DNA of 64,000 bases. Origin: Epithemia pelagica. Its lineage: Eukaryota; Protista; Bacillariophyta. Under the pieces are notes generated by a model, which saw only the letters and a program-made list of their open reading frames with translations, ran no database searches and was not told where the DNA came from. The stretch's first letter is position 1. The number at the start of each line of letters is the position of its first letter. The DNA is taken from the NCBI GenBank assembly GCA_946965045.2, contig OX337228.1:4836001-4900000 (forward strand), in the 5' to 3' direction. Shown here in pieces: positions 38,329 through 46,645 of this stretch. Both the position numbers and the translations under genes were made by a program.

Positions 38329-40131
38329 ATGGCGTCGGCTCATTTAAACGATGAGGCTGCAGTGGCAGCCGCGGACAAGGAAATGGAAGAGCGGGCTAAC
38401 CGCGCCAAGGAACTCTTGTCGAAGCGATACCATGGACTCAAGCGACAGCAGGTACGACCGAGAACACGTGTGAGCTTAATTGGAAGCGTTGTCTTGTTAC
38501 TGATTGCTCTTGATCATTTCTTGTTGTTGTCGTCGTTTTTCAGGAAGACAAGCATCACCGCAAAATGCAACTAGAACGTCAAATGGTGGGCTTACCCGAG
38601 CAAAAGAAACACGAGTTGCGACGTGTGTTGGAAGAAGAAGAGACGACAATTCAAAAGGAGTCTCGGCGTCGCATTCACGTTGCGGACTTTGAGTCTCTAG
38701 CCGTAATTGGACGAGGAGCCTTTGGGGAAGTACGTTTGGTGCGTCGAAAAGGCCGACCAGGGGATCCGTCAACGGGTCAAATTTTCGCATTGAAATCGAT
38801 GAAGAAAGAAATGATGGTGGTGAAGAATCAAGTTCATCACGTCAAGGCGGAAAGAGATGCCTTGGCAGCAGCCGAAGCCACAAATCGTTGGCTCACAGTG
38901 TTGCACTGTTCTTTCTTTGATGAAACTCATCTGTACATGGCCATGGAATATATGCCTGGTGGAGATCTCATGTCACTTCTCATCAAAGAGGATACTTTCT
39001 CCGAATCTGTGACCCGATTCTTCATGGCTGAAGCAGCGCAAGCAATTAGTTCCGTGCACGCGTTGGGCTACATTCACAGAGACATCAAACCTGACAATAT
39101 GCTCCTTGACGCGCGAGGTCATTTGAAATTGACCGATTTGGGTCTATGTAAAAAAGTTGGAGAAATATCTCCCCATGACGAACCTGAAGTTGTACTTGAA
39201 CGTTTGCGGGAAGAAGGGGCTCAAGGGGACTGGAGATCCACAATGAATAATGCGACCAGTGGGCCTGCTCCCAACGGGTCCTCTAGCTCCAACGCTGGGT
39301 CCATGTCCAATGGCAGTGGTTCGAAGCATCACATGGCCATGTCCATTGACGATGGGAATGTCAAGTCGCCACAGCCCCGCGACGGCAAAACTCGTCGTGA
39401 AATGGCCTATTCTACAGTAGGCACACCTGATTACATTGCTCCGGAAGTCTTGGCGGCCCAGAATGGAGCGTCGGGTTACTCGTACACTTGTGCTGTTGAT
39501 TGGTGGTCGTTGGGTGTGATCATGTTTGAATGTCTGGTTGGATACACGCCCTTTTATGCGGACGATCCTGTCACTACCTGTCGAAAGATTCTTCGATGGA
39601 GACAGTGTCTTGACCTGCCTGCGGAGACTAGAAATAATCTTTCTCATGAATGCTTGGACTTTCTCTCATGCTTATTGGCCAGTCCTGAATCGCGAATTGG
39701 GTCAGGGCAAAATGGGGAATTTCAAAATGGCTTTCAACAAGTTGTTCAACATCCTTGGTACCGTAACTTTGATTGGGAAGGGATGCGCGAACAGGATGGG
39801 CCGCTCCTTCCGAACGGCGCTCAGGAGATTAAAGAACTATTGGAATTCCTCAAGTATGTCCACACGTGAATTTTTATACCGTACTTGTTCTTGGTCTTAC
39901 AGCTCTTTCTTGTATTGATTATTTCTTTCGCCTTGCAGGACTTGTCCAAAATCGGACCCTCGATTTTCAACCCTTGTCAGCCGGGTGACGCAGAACTTCG
40001 ACACCTTCGAGGATTTGGGTTCAAATCTCGATGGCGAGCGCCAGCGTGTGACGAAAAACTCTCTTGACCAATTTTACAATTACGATTATCGTCGAGTCCG
40101 TAAACCTCGTGTTCCTCTTCCTGGAATGTAG
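38329..40131 (+). CDS. NDR/LATS-family AGC Ser/Thr kinase (exons 38329-38451, 38544-39853, 39939-40131; ~541 aa)
   Basis: NTR region ([13 protein letters not shown]), [19 protein letters not shown] in place of DFG, a long activation-segment insert ending [15 protein letters not shown], and a C-terminal NFD..FYNYDY tail. Confidence 0.95.
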
Positions 40132-40332: not shown

Positions 40333-43300
40333 CTAGTCGAAAGGGTTGGAGCTGGTGTTGCCATGTGAAGTCGAAGCTCTCGGGGTATTGTTGATTCCCA
40401 TCAGACTGATGGCTTCAATATCCACATCAGCCACTCCCATGCTACCGGAATCTTGAAAAAGACCGACATCAAGTTTGTCCAGCATTCCGGCAACTAAATC
40501 GACCGAATTGTCTTCCTCGACGTCGTTGTCAACCAGAGCGAACAGGCGTCCACGACGTGAAGCCGCCGGAACACCACGTCCAAGGTCAAATGGGAGTGAC
40601 GGAGGGTTTGCATTTGACACAGAGGCTAAACGCGGGACGGTTCCATCCGAAAAGACATCAGGCCCAAACGGTGAATCAGGAGTCAGAAAATATGGCGAGG
40701 TAACTGGTGGAGTTGATGTTTCAAAATCTGTTCGAAAAGGCTCCGTAAGCACTGCTGGCGGGGGAGACCTCCGTTCCTGGAAAGAACTAGGAGTACTTCC
40801 TCCGGTATCCAAAAATCTAGCCAAGGTAGATGGTTGCACCGCGAATTGGTGTTTTCCCTGCTCGCTTTGGAGAACTAGTAAAAGCGTCTTGTATGGCGAA
40901 AGTCGGGTGTCCTCTTGGCGATGAATGGAGCAAAATACATGTTCCGAATGCGGTGGAATCTCAGATACTTGTTCGTTTACGTCCAGTCGAGGGTCCATGA
41001 TGAGCAACTCATCTCTTATCTCACGTGAAGGATCATGAAGCGCAAGACCAGTGACAAAAACCACGAACGACATCGCAACTTCGCGTGTGTTAGCTTCTTG
41101 AATTAGGTCCAGCATTCGACTAAGATACTGAGATGCAACCAAACTATCGAATGGAAGGAGGACCATACACGAGCCTCCAGACTCTCGAAGTTCAGTGCAT
41201 TCGTCTTTCGTGAACGGTTTCTTTCCACCAAAAACTCCTTCCAGCTTCATCAACGATCCAAAATATGTATTTTGGGGACGGGCGGTGAGAGGATTGGAGG
41301 CAAGCTCAATCGAAACACTCAATATTTTCGAGAGGGAATCCTTTGCATGCGACGAAAGACGGCAATCAAGGCCAGTATCAGAGACGAGTAGGCCCATCGT
41401 TTCCTGGTTAATCAACAGAGAGAAAAACGCCGCAAGGATCTTATCCGACGGCCCGATGTAGCGTTGACGAAGCAGTTCCATGTCGGCTGTAGATAAGGCA
41501 ACTTCGTGTTGATCTTCCCAACAAATCAACTCGGAACTGAGGAGGTCATTGCGGGCACGGACAGATAGACCCTGCGTCGCATCGGTCCACTCTAACCCAC
41601 TTTGCTCATCAAGTTGGCTCGAGATGTGCGACAAATGTTGCGCAAGCTCATGACAAACCCCCGCAAACGCAACAGCAGCAGATTTGAGTGCCTCCATGTT
41701 CACAGCAGTGTTAAGACGTCGATTCTCCGTGATGAATTGCCTCTGAAAGAAAGCGATCCCTTTGCTTGTATCCGTCCAACTAGGGATGAGTGGATCTAAA
41801 TACTGATCATCACCGTGGCTTGCACGGATAACCCACCGGCATATGATTCTCTTCAATACGGTCACGGGGAAGACGTCTTGAACCTTCTCGGCTCGACGCA
41901 GCAGTTCTTCGATATTGCTCTTTCGATGTATAGCAATGGAAGGCTGTTCGATAAATATACGATCGGAGGTATGACGAAAACCGTTGTTGGTCGATGCATC
42001 TTGTTGAATGCTCTTCTTAATTGGTTCACTCTGCACTGTGGGCAAAGAAGACGGCAGAGATTGCGTAGAGGGCATTGTACCACTGGAAACAGGATGCAAA
42101 GGGACACCAACAGGACGGTTCTCCGCAGATGATTCTAGAGACGCTTTTGTGGAGTTGACCATGGACTGTTCATGCTTCCTGGTTGTTTCCCACCGACGAT
42201 TGCCTTCTAGAGCTGGCATGCTCTTCAGGGGTTTATCAAGGTTATTCAACGCAGCGGGAGAACCAGCCGGTACAACAGAAGATCGCTTTGTTCTCGTTGG
42301 TTTCCCTGCTCTCCCGTCAGTTGATACGGTGGATACGTGGCCCTGATGCCTTGGCGAATTGGGTGGATCTTTCATATTTTTCTCTTCCCGTTGTTTCTGA
42401 CGTTCTTTTCGTTCCTTAACACGTCGTTGTTCTTGGAGATTTTTCTCTCGCTTCATCATCTCTTCAATTTCTCGCTCCTTTTGTTCACTCAGTCGCTTCT
42501 CGCGTTCCTTCTTCTCGCGATCTTCACGTTCCTTCCGCAACTGTTCGCGTTCCCGTTCTTCTTGCTCTTCCCTCTCGCGGCGTTCCCTCTCTTCTTTCAA
42601 TTTCTGTTGACGTTCACGTTCTTTCTTTTTTCGTTTCTTCGCTTGTTTTTTACTTGCCTCTGCCTCCTCTTTTTTCGCTTCCTCTTCCTCCGCCGCAAGC
42701 TCTCGTAGCAACTCCTCCTCCGCTGCCTTTGCTTTCTCTTCGGCTGACATCTTGGATGTGCCCTTTGGCTTCTTTTTATCTGAATTGGAATCGGAATGGA
42801 AACCATTTGCAACATGCTGTGCTAGCATGGCTTCACCTTCTTCATCATTCTCGCTTTCATCTTCATCGTCAAGAGAATTTTTACCTTCGCGATCGAGCTG
42901 TTTCATCCGCAAATTAATGAGCAAACGCGCCCTCTGCACTTTCTTGCGATCACGTGAACAACGGGGAATGCTTGCATTGTACTTAGTGACCATGTCAACC
43001 GCCGCATCGATCAAATTTTGCTCCACGAGAATCGACAACGCAGTGTCGCCCTTCTTGGTTGTAACTGTGTGATCAGCTCCGTGCCGGAGTAGGAGATCAA
43101 CTGTGTCTGTCAGGCCTTTTGTCGCTGCTTGAAGCAAGGCGCTAAGCGTCGGATCATCCTCTTCCGTTGGTGCCCCTTCTTCCAACAGTAGCCGTACTAC
43201 ATCATCGTGGCCTTTGTAGGCAGCTATGCTGAGAGGCGACCATCCGGTGTCGGTGCATTTGCATGGATCGGCTCCACTCGCAAGCAACACTTCTACCGCC

Positions 43301-44646
43301 CCTGCTTGACCGTGATTTGCGGCTGTCAGCAAAGGAGTCTCCCTCCACTTGTTCAATGCATGAGGGTCCGCATCGGCCACCAAGAGAATTTTGACTGAGG
43401 CGAGATGGCCTGGTTTGGAACCAGCACAAGCTTTGTGAAGCGGAGTACTAAGATCTTCTGACACTCTACTGTTGACCGGTGCCCCAGCCCGAAGCAGCAG
43501 GGCTACAATGTCGTCGTACCCCTTGTGTGCGGCGAAGGTAAGCGCAGACCACCCTGCCTCGCTGCAAAGGGAAGGATCTGCACCATGTCGGAGAAGTGCC
43601 GCCACACCTAAACGGTGACCATTGTTGGCTGCAATCAGCAAGGGAGTTTCTCGCCATTTGTTGCATGCATTGCAGTCTGCGTTTCGCTTGAGAAGAATTT
43701 CAAGAACATCCAAAGATCCCGTGCTTGAACCAGACGAGCAAGCAGTATGAAGAGGGGTGTAAAGATCGTCTTTGAACTGACAATTGACAGAAGCTCCATT
43801 TTCCAAACACAGCTCCACTGCATCCGCATCCCCTTCTTCGACAGCGCATTTGAGGTAGAGCTCTGAATCTTCTTCATCAATACTCACCAGAGATGACTTA
43901 ACAGTCACCGATGCACGAACTTTGAGTGAATCGTTTGAAACAAATCCCTCTTGTTGAATACGATCGGAAGTTATGAATTGTGACCAACCCCAGTCAATTG
44001 CTTTTGGACATAATTTGAACGTTTTGTCTGGGTTTCGTTTGGCGTAACAGTAGGTTGATCCATTGGGGTGTTCCAACGTCAACACATAGCTCACAGATTT
44101 CTTCCATCCAAAAGGTAGATCATCAGCATCGGCTACCTGTAAAAACAAACTCAGGTGATGGTTGCTTGCTCTTCCATTTCCGTTCACATATATTATAAGT
44201 CTCCAACGGTTACCGTGGTCATCAACCTTGATTTCACTATATTCTGCCTTCTTGCAGCCAGATTCTCGTTTGTTGGAATAATCGGTTATAATGTGAGTGA
44301 ATTCTGTTGTTGACTGTACATTCTGAGGGTGCCACGCTGGATGCTTATCCTCCGAATCAGCTTCGTCATCATCCTCGTCTGGCTCAACATGATCTCCCCC
44401 ATCATCGTCGCGCGACCTCTTACGTTTGTCTCCACGACTCTTGTGGTTACGAATGACATCATGACCATGTTCTTCATCATCGGTCTCGTCATCCACCAAG
44501 AGAGCCCCAGATGGTTCTAGCGGCTCCGGACTGCTTGAACTTGTTTCATCGTGGTGCTGATGATTCATGCTAAGAACACTAGATGATGACTCCTCCACAA
44601 CCGCACTGTTACTAGCGGATACTGGGGTACTTCCCCAGCGGAGCAT
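40333..44646 (-). CDS. MATH + ankyrin repeats + charged coiled coil + PCIF1/CAPAM-like methyltransferase-fold domain
   Basis: MATH (RWRLIIYVNGN..HLSLFLQ..DWGWSQFI), ~9 ankyrin repeats (TPLH/TPLL..AA), a K/E/R coiled coil, then GLDCRLSSHAKDSLSKILSVSIELASNPL...MSFVVFV...VLQSEQG. Likely start MLRWG at 44646 (track start 44739). Confidence 0.85.
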   Translation of the reverse strand: MLRWGSTPVSASNSAVVEESSSSVLSMNHQHHDETSSSSPEPLEPSGALLVDDETDDEEHGHDVIRNHKSRGDKRKRSRDDDGGDHVEPDEDDDEADSEDKHPAWHPQNVQSTTEFTHIITDYSNKRESGCKKAEYSEIKVDDHGNRWRLIIYVNGNGRASNHHLSLFLQVADADDLPFGWKKSVSYVLTLEHPNGSTYCYAKRNPDKTFKLCPKAIDWGWSQFITSDRIQQEGFVSNDSLKVRASVTVKSSLVSIDEEDSELYLKCAVEEGDADAVELCLENGASVNCQFKDDLYTPLHTACSSGSSTGSLDVLEILLKRNADCNACNKWRETPLLIAANNGHRLGVAALLRHGADPSLCSEAGWSALTFAAHKGYDDIVALLLRAGAPVNSRVSEDLSTPLHKACAGSKPGHLASVKILLVADADPHALNKWRETPLLTAANHGQAGAVEVLLASGADPCKCTDTGWSPLSIAAYKGHDDVVRLLLEEGAPTEEDDPTLSALLQAATKGLTDTVDLLLRHGADHTVTTKKGDTALSILVEQNLIDAAVDMVTKYNASIPRCSRDRKKVQRARLLINLRMKQLDREGKNSLDDEDESENDEEGEAMLAQHVANGFHSDSNSDKKKPKGTSKMSAEEKAKAAEEELLRELAAEEEEAKKEEAEASKKQAKKRKKKERERQQKLKEERERREREEQEEREREQLRKEREDREKKEREKRLSEQKEREIEEMMKREKNLQEQRRVKERKERQKQREEKNMKDPPNSPRHQGHVSTVSTDGRAGKPTRTKRSSVVPAGSPAALNNLDKPLKSMPALEGNRRWETTRKHEQSMVNSTKASLESSAENRPVGVPLHPVSSGTMPSTQSLPSSLPTVQSEPIKKSIQQDASTNNGFRHTSDRIFIEQPSIAIHRKSNIEELLRRAEKVQDVFPVTVLKRIICRWVIRASHGDDQYLDPLIPSWTDTSKGIAFFQRQFITENRRLNTAVNMEALKSAAVAFAGVCHELAQHLSHISSQLDEQSGLEWTDATQGLSVRARNDLLSSELICWEDQHEVALSTADMELLRQRYIGPSDKILAAFFSLLINQETMGLLVSDTGLDCRLSSHAKDSLSKILSVSIELASNPLTARPQNTYFGSLMKLEGVFGGKKPFTKDECTELRESGGSCMVLLPFDSLVASQYLSRMLDLIQEANTREVAMSFVVFVTGLALHDPSREIRDELLIMDPRLDVNEQVSEIPPHSEHVFCSIHRQEDTRLSPYKTLLLVLQSEQGKHQFAVQPSTLARFLDTGGSTPSSFQERRSPPPAVLTEPFRTDFETSTPPVTSPYFLTPDSPFGPDVFSDGTVPRLASVSNANPPSLPFDLGRGVPAASRRGRLFALVDNDVEEDNSVDLVAGMLDKLDVGLFQDSGSMGVADVDIEAISLMGINNTPRASTSHGNTSSNPFD

Positions 44647-45571
44647 GTTTGCTATGTGATGGTTGCGTTTCCGGGATGATACGATACAGTTTTCTGCGTC
44701 CAGGAAGAAAGGAAGAAAAAAATCGGAAGATGGAAACAAAATGCGTCAGTTGACTACCAACGACTGATCCAATTTCAAGGTATGTTTTACCATATTGACA
44801 GTTTGGAGCAAAAACATTCTAATGCTTCTTCAATGTCCCGTAAGGTTGCTTCCATCGCATTCCAAGAAACTACTATGCGGGCACACTCGTATCACGATTT
44901 CTCTGTGATCAATGAGAATCCTTCCAACACCCTCCGCGTGATCTTCCAATCAATTGACAAAGGGTCTCGCCAGTCCCTACACAATGCTGTTCACATGGCA
45001 ACCTACCTTGGAATTGTCTTTCGTCCGTGTCCAATCTTGCTGCGGCAATTGGCGCAAGGACCAGCCGTGCCCTCTTCGTTAGGTTGTGGGGTTTGCAACC
45101 ACATTCACCACACACACACATAAACATTTTTTCTATCGTATCGCACAGGCCAGCCACAGCCAGAGGCGGACTTCTCGCCCTCGCTCTCGCCGCCGTGTCC
45201 GTCACGGTCGGAAGATGAGGGGGTACATTAAAGTTTATATTAGTACAGTCTCATTGTTGTATTTATGATTCAGTAGTATATGGCTTTCAAGTTTGACGGA
45301 CGATTCTACTGACAGATAACCGACATATCACGTTTGAATCATCCGGGATCCTCCCACTTCCCGAACGACGGACGACGACAGGCGGGGGGAGTCAGGCACA
45401 AAAAAGACATTTCAAACTTTTCTAATAGCACAACGAATTACCGATGCACACTTACATATAACCTGTCCATATCCATGATTCGTCGGCTCCAAATTTCGGC
45501 AGACACTTACAAAAGCTAAAGCATTTCCACCAAGGACCGATTCTCTTTGAAAAGCTGAAGTTAAGGGAAGA

Positions 45572-46645
45572 ATGAATGATAGGTTAGGTGACGTCCCCGG
45601 TTGGGCAATCGAAGATGCTCAGTCCAACACAGAGTTCGACAATGAACCTCCGCTGAGTGGACAACATGGTAAAAAGGATGGAAAGAAAGGTGGAGGTGAC
45701 ATAGAAATGGGAAATCAGCAACCTCAACAAGCAAAACACATGGAACATTTCTTTCGTGAAGTTGAATCGATCAAGGAAGACATTGAATCCGTGAAGAAAG
45801 CTACCAAGACCATAGGTGATATCAACGAAGCCGCATTGCAAGCGACGACAACTGAAGAAGAGAATGAGTTGTCGAGAAAGCTACGACCGCTCGTCGACCA
45901 AACAAATAAGCGAGCAAAGCGAACAAAAACATTGTTGGGCCTTCTGAAAGAAGAAACCAAAAAATTGCAGAATGAGGACGCCATTAAACAGTCTGACCTA
46001 CGGTGAGTATTCGTCAATCTCGTTCTTTCCTTGGTTGCTTTCCAAGACTTGGTCATTGTCATGCAATGTGCCCCCTCATGACGCTGTTGTTCATTTTGCA
46101 ACGTCTGCAGTATTCGAGAGAATCTTGTGAACACACTGACGCGCAAGTTCATCGACGAGATGAAAGCTTATCAAGCGGCGCAGCAAAAGTATAAAACGGA
46201 TATTAAGAAGAAAGTCACCCGACAAGTGCAGATCGTAAAACCCGACGCTACCGAGGAAGAAATTGACGAGGTCATGCGTAGCGAAGGAGGCCGTGATTCT
46301 TTGTACAGGGAGCGAATCCTGGCAGGTGGTGTCAACGATCAAGTGAAAACATCCTACGCCAAAGTTGCTGGAAAGTATCAAGATGTCTTGGCATTGGAAC
46401 AATCTGTAGCCGAGCTTCATCAAATGTTTTTGGACTTTGCTCTCTTGACAGAGCAACAGGGAGAGTTACTTGATCAAATTGAATTCCAAGTTAAACAGGC
46501 CGGTGACTACATCGAAGATGCTAATGTGGATGTCTATGAATCAATTGAGTATCAACGCAAGATTCGAAAGAAACAGTGTTGGATTATCCTCATTGTTATC
46601 ATTGCCACAGTTGTCCTCCTCTTTGCAATTGGGGTTCTACCATGA
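45572..46645 (+). CDS. Syntaxin (Qa-SNARE, syntaxin-1/SYP1 type) (exons 45572-46002, 46111-46645)
   Basis: Habc helices, SNARE motif LEQSVAELHQMFLDFALLTEQQGELLDQIE, and a C-terminal TM anchor. Confidence 0.95.

Follow-up and report, generated by a model that had tools for sequence, protein, structure and literature searches.

Introduction

The vertebrate protein PCIF1/CAPAM (PDB 6IRV-6IS0) is a cap-specific writer of N6,2'-O-dimethyladenosine (m6Am). N553 and the NPPF motif are needed for its activity, and mutations of NPPF inactivate it (PMC8287941). The 7-methylguanosine (m7G) is contacted by human W588, P591/P592, E558 and R235 (PMC13290413), and the human helical domain, reported to be 15% positive, is used in RNA binding (PMC8287941). 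An N-terminal WW domain that binds the phosphorylated C-terminal domain (CTD) of RNA polymerase II (Pol II) is usual in the family (PMC4738411). Here we describe an open reading frame (ORF), probably a gene of the diatom Epithemia pelagica, that joins a MATH domain and an ankyrin array to a divergent module of the PCIF1 type. It lies on the minus strand of a stretch of 64,000 nucleotides, called the window (NCBI GenBank assembly GCA_946965045.2, contig OX337228.1, positions 4,836,001 to 4,900,000 of the forward strand), and coordinates are given as positions within this window. Judging from the sequence and its relatives, the protein is probably a conserved diatom scaffold whose C-terminal module descends from PCIF1/CAPAM and has lost adenine methylation.

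METTL14 is a pseudo-methyltransferase and the obligate partner of METTL3, and in it the Rossmann fold of the N6-methyladenosine (m6A) methyltransferases is kept in a non-catalytic role. The Pcif1 protein of Drosophila is without m6Am activity; the catalytic-dead protein regulates gene expression, and a non-catalytic role has been proposed for it (PMC10158991). DIRS1 retrotransposons carry PCIF1-clade domains that were judged inactive from catalytic and substrate-binding substitutions (PMC4738411), and choanoflagellates have eTudor-DCD-CAPAM-like fusion proteins (PMC7641849). A recent activity screen chose its PCIF1-like candidates by the catalytic motif and the stacking Trp (bioRxiv 10.64898/2026.10.22.757692). 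Pseudo-PCIF1 proteins are already known, and the kind itself is not new. Three features of the diatom protein appear undescribed in the literature searched: the loss of the catalytic Asn across a whole lineage, the MATH-ankyrin-charged-PCIF1-tail architecture, and a genome apparently without an active PCIF1.

The C-terminal module has the fold of PCIF1/CAPAM

The complete coding sequence and the two domains of the module are as follows.

40333-44646, minus strand: complete coding sequence, a single exon of 1437 codons (40336-44646) followed by a stop codon (40333-40335), verified
41380-41979, minus strand: CAPAM/PCIF1-type helical domain, residues 890-1089
40777-41379, minus strand: Rossmann methyltransferase-like domain, catalytically degenerate, residues 1090-1290

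By fold and by sequence profile, the protein is a member of the PCIF1/CAPAM superfamily. The whole module, helical and methyltransferase domains together, occupies residues 890-1295. An earlier note on this DNA, made from the letters without database searches, had recognized PCIF1-like peptide blocks in this region. All of them are present, since translation of 40816-41520 on the minus strand gives GLDCRLSSHAKDSLSKILSVSIELASNPL, YFGSLMKLEGVFGG, GGSCMVLLPF, MSFVVFV, HVF and KTLLLVLQSEQG.

The single sequence carries little of this signal. Pfam scans of the C-terminal 622 and 455 residues of the window protein returned no family even at E 10, and a phmmer search of the PDB with the window protein alone gave human PCIF1 (6IRV) as its only match, at E 0.78. 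The Pfam family PF12237 is too insensitive for the divergent members of the clade described below, and identity was established through orthologues and profiles; 9 of 13 family members match PF12237, with a best E of 1e-12. A word-indexed search of proteins, run with just the C-terminal piece, came back empty; this reflects a length-window artefact and does not count as absence. A full-length profile search of the PDB was swamped by ankyrin and DARPin matches, and C-terminal pieces cut from orthologue loci were used instead. Small clade profiles matched only PCIF1/CAPAM in the PDB, at E 3.8e-7 and 5.5e-5 and, with a second profile, at 4.6e-5 and 4.6e-4. A comparison by hhalign of a four-sequence clade profile (A4) with a profile of 17 canonical, NPPF-bearing PCIF1-like proteins (A5), which itself matches CAPAM at E 1e-105, gave a probability of 99.8% and an E of 7e-28 over 367 columns, including the helical domain. 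The helical domain carries the block RW...R...DPLIPSWTD...FFQRQFI, and in the hhalign register the rW and DP.IP of the clade stand opposite the canonical ferW and DPLiP.

Structure prediction points the same way. An AlphaFold model of the module from 13 sequences reached a predicted local distance difference test score (pLDDT) of 84.8 and a predicted template modelling score of 0.86, and in an AlphaFold 2 model from 47 sequences pLDDT was mostly above 90 across the module. Foldseek placed CAPAM/PCIF1 structures in all of its top six positions (E 1e-14 to 3e-13), followed by a next match at 7e-3. VIA-align superposed model residues 2-395 on residues 192-673 of the CAPAM chain, spanning both domains, with Z 30-31 (best 31.3) over 348 residues at a root-mean-square deviation of 3.5 A; the next, unrelated structure had Z 8.7. 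A feature search of the ESM Atlas agreed, and all 30 clusters among the matches listed belong to PF12237. In the predicted structure both parts of the CAPAM fold, helical domain and Rossmann methyltransferase domain, are thus preserved in full, and the PCIF1-type assignment of the earlier note has withstood the fold comparison. The diatom and vertebrate proteins share the blocks RW...DP.IP, G-L-x-x-x-L, V-S-x-E, D-x-x-F-G, G-S, P-L-S-F and L-Q. The diatom protein differs from vertebrate PCIF1 in reading LLPF for NPPF and Leu for W588, and in having no WW domain. It adds a MATH domain, ankyrin repeats, a charged stretch and a motif-bearing tail, and its module is neutral to acidic rather than basic.

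Loss of the catalytic Asn and of the cap-stacking Trp

Profile A4, run by HMMER in full against 1.84 billion representatives, returned 160 proteins at E <=1e-3, which divide cleanly into a canonical group and a diatom clade. Residue counts come from 51 non-redundant canonical sequences and from 87 non-redundant clade rows, of which 81 are informative where the catalytic motif lies. The canonical group reads V.xECFASPL, then FPD[TV]D..FGS, then NPPF (50/51; NPP in 51/51), and most of its members have P-x-W after strand 5. The diatom clade reads VS.ELWSDP, F.D[VI]D..FGG and [L/M/F/V/I]-[P/L]-P-[L/P/F] at the NPPF site. The corresponding positions of the window protein are these.

41287-41316, minus strand: motif I, VSIELASNPL (canonical V.FECFASPL), from the alignment
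41236-41265, minus strand: acidic D-x-D region, YFGSLMKLEG, with K-L-E for D-x-D (canonical FPDTDgyFGS), from the alignment
41149-41160, minus strand: LLPF at the catalytic NPPF site (motif IV), from the translation, with HMMER and hhalign registers in agreement
41038-41040, minus strand: Leu1203 at the site of the cap-stacking Trp (human W588), from the alignment register

The position that the earlier note gave for LLPF is exact, and its reading of the NPPF motif as degenerate holds. Asn occurs at this site in none of the 81 informative clade sequences. It is replaced by Leu (45), Met (11), Phe (9), Val (7) or Ile (5), while the first Pro of the motif is kept in 46% of the clade, the second in 86% and the Phe in 12%. 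The loss is not peculiar to one strain, a possibility that the earlier note had left to the orthologues. In motif I that note had paired FASPLN with LASNPL; the register was off by one, and the canonical ECFASPL aligns with ELASNPL.

Residues on the cofactor side have fared differently from those of the NPPF motif. The Glu of motif I is kept in 90% of the clade, and the Ser that follows in every canonical sequence has become Asp or Asn; Ser residues of the canonical group are in general replaced systematically. The first Asp of D-x-D, found in 98% of canonical sequences, is kept in 59% of the clade; the site is acidic in 78% (47 Asp and 15 Glu of about 80) and is Lys in the window protein. The second Asp is present in 95% of the clade and is Glu in the window protein. 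The F-G pair and the Gln of the LQ motif (100%) are essentially invariant.

The cap site was read with human numbering for W588, P591/P592, E558 and R235 placed through PDB chain offsets. The W588 site is Phe in most of the clade and Leu in the subclade of the window protein, and it is never Trp. At the E558 site the Glu has given way to Ser, Asn or Thr. The equivalent of R235 is kept as R or K in the RW motif and is the only m7G contact retained. Both criteria used by the activity screen, catalytic motif and stacking Trp, fail in the diatom clade. Net charge is about 0 for the helical domain and about -6 for the methyltransferase domain. We file the protein as a member of a PCIF1-derived pseudoenzyme subfamily and not as a functional PCIF1 orthologue: it has neither NPPF nor the stacking Trp nor the WW domain usual in the family, and so falls outside the family as defined by function.

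A single clade in diatoms

In a tree of the methyltransferase region, built without DIRS1 sequences, the 61 clade rows form one branch with a Shimodaira-Hasegawa-like approximate likelihood ratio test support of 100 and a stem of 0.94 substitutions per site. The loss of Asn maps once, onto this stem. Names were obtained for about 30 matches, and the diatoms named represent four genera: the pennates Entomoneis paludosa, Stauroneis constricta and Nitzschia inconspicua, and the centric Detonula confervacea. Because Asn is absent across pennate and centric members alike, the loss of the catalytic motif is ancient, and the replacement of Asn by a hydrophobic residue is shown to lie at the base of the pennate plus centric clade.

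The architecture is a property of the clade. The combination of MATH, ankyrin and tail occurs in 25 of 25 full-length members. Four shorter gene models were fetched (P0006, P0007, P0010 and P0013), and all four adjoin an upstream gene fragment, which carries MATH and/or ankyrin in the three whose upstream product was looked up (P0006, P0010 and P0013); on this ground the short models are taken to be genes split in the calling. The earlier note knew of no described protein of this kind, and no description of a MATH-ankyrin-PCIF1 protein was found in the literature searched. The protein is not unique to this organism, however, being present in every full-length clade member and in GenBank, where that of Nitzschia inconspicua (KAG7356494.1) sits as 'ankyrin repeat domain protein'. 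The proteins carry such names in databases because PF12237 misses the most divergent members.

Triparma has an 893-residue protein with a canonical NPPF and without MATH or ankyrin. Its group, the Parmales, is the sister group of diatoms. P0199 (1602 residues, from a marine JGI metagenome, in the cluster of P0101) is collinear with the window protein from the MATH domain to the PCIF1 module, which indicates that the MATH-ankyrin-PCIF1 fusion is older or wider than the diatom clade. It shares an RCSRD.RKV motif and the charged stretch with the window protein, and it has in addition a RanBP zinc finger and a DCD domain before the PCIF1 module. Motif I of P0199 is canonical and its NPPF site reads HPPA. 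The deep nodes of the tree do not settle the placement of P0199/P0101 relative to the diatom clade. P0199 is without the motif-bearing tail of the clade.

The window gene is the only PCIF1-like gene of this genome

The MATH-ankyrin-PCIF1-like gene is single copy, and a search with the canonical profile A5 across the whole 60.5-Mb genome of this diatom found no canonical PCIF1, the sole match being the window gene (E 9e-13). A six-frame match to PF12237 on contig 5 (969778-969993; E 0.02) was judged spurious, lying antisense inside a protein-kinase-like ORF of 579 residues. This genome is the one in which the absence of canonical PCIF1 was examined. The prediction that follows is that Epithemia pelagica, and probably diatoms generally, would be without PCIF1-type cap m6Am.

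Architecture and constraint of the rest of the protein

From N to C terminus the protein consists of an acidic head, a MATH domain, an ankyrin array, a charged stretch, a Ser/Pro linker, the PCIF1-like module and a disordered tail. The parts outside the module are listed here.

44317-44646, minus strand: N-terminal region, residues 1-110, acidic and rich in Ser, with the basic cluster KRKR at 74-77 (translation and pattern scan)
43900-44301, minus strand: MATH domain, TRAF-like, residues 116-249 (PF22486 E 5.5e-20; PF00917 E 6e-10)
42922-43869, minus strand: ankyrin array of about nine repeats, residues 260-575 (PF12796 E 2.3e-45 in 5 stretches; PF00023 E 3.1e-42 in 7 stretches)
42277-42774, minus strand: Glu/Lys/Arg-rich charged stretch of 166 residues, residues 625-790, 59% E+K+R (composition and pattern scan)
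41980-42276, minus strand: low-complexity Ser/Pro linker, residues 791-889, the fastest-evolving segment
40336-40776, minus strand: disordered C-terminal tail of 147 residues, residues 1291-1437, with pLDDT below 50 throughout in the 47-sequence model
40522-40557, minus strand: tail motif RRGRLFALVDND, consensus RRGRLF.LVD, of invariant or near-invariant columns
Within 40450-40500, minus strand: tail motif AGMLDKLDVGLFQD, consensus GML..LDVGLFQ, of invariant or near-invariant columns
40393-40428, minus strand: tail motif DVDIEAISLMGI, of invariant or near-invariant columns

The MATH and ankyrin domains named in the earlier note are confirmed by these Pfam matches. A Pfam scan of the full protein found the MATH and ankyrin families only; there was no WW domain, no BTB, RING or other ubiquitin-ligase domain, and no reverse transcriptase, recombinase or RNase H domain in the ORF, and residues 1-110 held no domain. 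The MATH profile was matched over nearly its full length (PF22486 positions 2-136 of 136). Its closest PDB sequences by phmmer are of the TRAF family, mostly TRAF4 (E 3e-5 to 1e-4), and the other matches were TRAF5, TRAF2 and two weak ones to KBTBD4. Pfam starts the ankyrin repeats at residue 265 (PF12796). The array closes with the conserved NASIPRCSRDRKKVQR, and this terminal motif is also found in the distant relative P0199. The charged stretch contains KKRKKK-type basic runs resembling a nuclear localisation signal (NLS), with KKRK at residue 670, and it is present in all long homologues. By its composition it may be a long charged helix or spacer together with a nuclear targeting signal.

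The earlier note had the protein end in the methyltransferase-like domain, which is not the case, as the disordered tail with its conserved motifs follows. A tail motif was found in 96 of the 98 clade sequences of sufficient length. Within the linker, the triplet R818-W819-E820 (42187-42195, minus strand) is invariant in 13 sequences, with the consensus N-R-R-W-E-T; standing amid otherwise unconserved Ser/Pro sequence, it may be another short linear motif.

Constraint was measured as nonsynonymous divergence (dN) against the nearest orthologue, on the related diatom contig L004. Only dN is informative here, since synonymous sites are saturated or nearly so (proportion of synonymous differences, pS, 0.63-0.97). 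MATH has a dN of 0.024 and ankyrin one of 0.038; the value is 0.15 in the conserved part of the tail, 0.36 in both the helical and the methyltransferase domain, and 0.58 in the linker. By this measure, constraint on MATH and ankyrin is shown to be about 10 times that on the PCIF1-like module, and identity to the nearest orthologue is 95% for MATH plus ankyrin versus 56% for the module. The module is much less constrained than MATH and ankyrin, yet it is far from free, as shown by its confidently predicted fold and by the columns that are invariant in 47 sequences (D62, I65, P66, S67, C109, A113, D133, F250, S304 and Q371).

Gene model and neighbouring genes

The minus-strand frame is open and unbroken over 40333-44739 in the ORF list, and a start at its first ATG, at 44646, gives the protein of 1437 residues. 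Four orthologues share the N-terminus MLRWGS, and the window protein aligns end to end with 12 homologues, some of them derived from transcripts (MMETSP). No intron is needed, because the N-terminus and the entire length align with homologues that include these transcript-derived sequences. The flanking features are two.

38565-39869, plus strand: protein kinase ORF (PF00069 E 7e-51) with a long insert within the kinase domain
45572-46006, plus strand: N-terminal fragment of a syntaxin (PF00804 E 1.4e-6)

L004 has these neighbours in the order of the window, with syntaxin first, then the MATH-ankyrin-PCIF1-like gene, then the kinase, and syntaxin also lies upstream of the orthologue in a third contig, L003.

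What the module may do

If the scaffold reading is right, the protein would be nuclear, given its basic NLS-like clusters and long charged stretch, and would work as an adaptor. It would contact its protein partners through the MATH domain, which is TRAF-like, through the ankyrin array and through the three tail motifs, and the dead PCIF1 module would serve as a binding or regulatory surface and not in catalysis. Its ligand may be a protein, or possibly S-adenosylmethionine (SAM), S-adenosylhomocysteine (SAH) or a nucleotide, which can be considered because part of the cofactor-side motifs survives. By analogy, this role would parallel the non-catalytic gene-regulatory one proposed for Drosophila Pcif1. 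The two are alike in that a PCIF1-derived protein has been retained, in the fly without m6Am activity (PMC10158991). The fly protein keeps the Asn (NPPF to NPPH; PMC9479742) and the WW domain for the Pol II CTD, whereas in the diatom clade the Asn itself is gone, there is no WW domain and the domain architecture differs.

Several points weigh against the scaffold reading. We infer inactivity from the loss of the motif alone; SAM binding or other methyl-transfer chemistry is possible because the motif I Glu, the second Asp, F-G-G and the LQ Gln are conserved. The nuclear localisation, the partners of MATH and ankyrin and the role of the tail are all deduced as well. The module also evolves fast (56% against 95% identity) and could be weakly functional. 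In a whole lineage the fold of PCIF1 has persisted, joined to MATH and ankyrin domains, although the catalytic Asn and the cap-stacking Trp are gone, and at least in this genome there is no active copy. Diatoms would therefore be a second natural experiment of this kind, independent of the first and much older, and a conserved diatom-specific protein, likely nuclear, is identified for functional study.

The earlier note favoured a cap- or RNA-binding module with a link to ubiquitin or signalling. The protein would then be a pseudoenzyme that binds caps or RNA 5' ends and tethers capped transcripts to signalling or ubiquitin machinery held by the MATH and ankyrin domains, which we consider unlikely. 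The helical domain, which in CAPAM shares with the methyltransferase domain in shaping the cap groove, is retained in full, the Arg equivalent to the m7G contact R235 (PMC13290413) is kept as R or K, and the Phe at the W588 site of most clade members could still stack on a base. The proposal is weakened by the same site, where Trp never occurs and the subclade of the window has Leu, by the loss of Glu at the E558 site, and by the charge of the module, neutral to acidic (about 0 and about -6) where the human helical domain is reported to be 15% positive. The ubiquitin link was pure conjecture: the MATH domain is TRAF-like, and the Pfam scan contains no BTB, RING or other ligase domain.

It is rather improbable that the module has remained enzymatic, as a SAM-dependent methyltransferase with a new target (a non-amino acceptor or a protein, for example) for which NPPF is not needed. 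The partial conservation of the cofactor-side motifs (Glu 90%, second Asp 95%, FGG, Gln 100%) would suit it, and residues conserved within the clade itself, such as W-S-D-P in motif I, G254 and G265, point to a selected pocket. These observations have to be set against a first D-x-D site at which no more than 78% of the clade has an acidic residue and the window protein has Lys, against hydrophobic residues that fill the catalytic loop, and against a dN 10 times that of MATH and ankyrin, whereas active PCIF1 is reported to be strongly conserved (PMC4738411).

Another version would make the dead module a ligand sensor, with SAM/SAH or a capped or modified 5' nucleotide as the ligand, that gates the recruitment of partners by the highly constrained MATH-ankyrin unit and the tail motifs. 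We hold this to be quite improbable. Were it true, diatoms would have in this protein a lineage-specific nuclear switch that ties the state of the methyl cycle or of the RNA cap to the recruitment or turnover of proteins, and in the metagenomic DCD-bearing form one would see the machine at an earlier stage, as a reader.

The module could also be a functionless, decaying relic carried by a functional MATH-ankyrin protein, and it is indeed the fastest-evolving folded part, its dN of 0.36 being merely 1.6-fold under the 0.58 of the linker. Its retention in 25 of 25 full-length members, pennate and centric, with invariant columns, its preserved and confidently predicted fold, and the lack of any frameshift or truncation seen within the domain make decay very improbable. 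Hardly credible is domestication of the module from the inactive PCIF1-like domain of a DIRS1-type retrotransposon, and not from cellular PCIF1: DIRS1 elements do carry likely inactive PCIF1-derived domains (PMC4738411), but theirs sit in multicopy transposon polyproteins, whereas the diatom gene is single copy, cellular and in conserved synteny, carries MATH and ankyrin domains with no reverse transcriptase, recombinase or RNase H in its ORF, has the full CAPAM helical domain, and has in P0199 a collinear relative with a canonical motif I. A partnership of the METTL14 kind, in which a dead protein works with an active paralogue, is unlikely and was set aside, since an active paralogue of PCIF1 is absent from this genome.

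Other PCIF1-like proteins in the search

The protist DCD-CAPAM-like fusions, P0199 among them, resemble the diatom protein in being long, multidomain and CAPAM-like in their C-terminal domain. They differ in carrying the DCD domain, which binds modified bases, and P0199 also has its RanBP zinc finger; the diatom clade is without both. Two further fusions were seen, P0112 (DCD-PCIF1) and P0150 (Myb-DCD-PCIF1, with an intact NPPF). The otherwise canonical proteins P0149, P0154, P0168 and P0221 read GPPY, CPPF or NPVF at motif IV, a hint that the catalytic motif has degenerated independently in other lineages than diatoms as well. The nearest clusters with PF12237 in the feature space of the ESM Atlas are dominated by Nucleocytoviricota, so that short proteins of the PCIF1 type seem to be numerous in giant viruses, and some of the canonical metagenomic matches of 300-500 residues may be viral.

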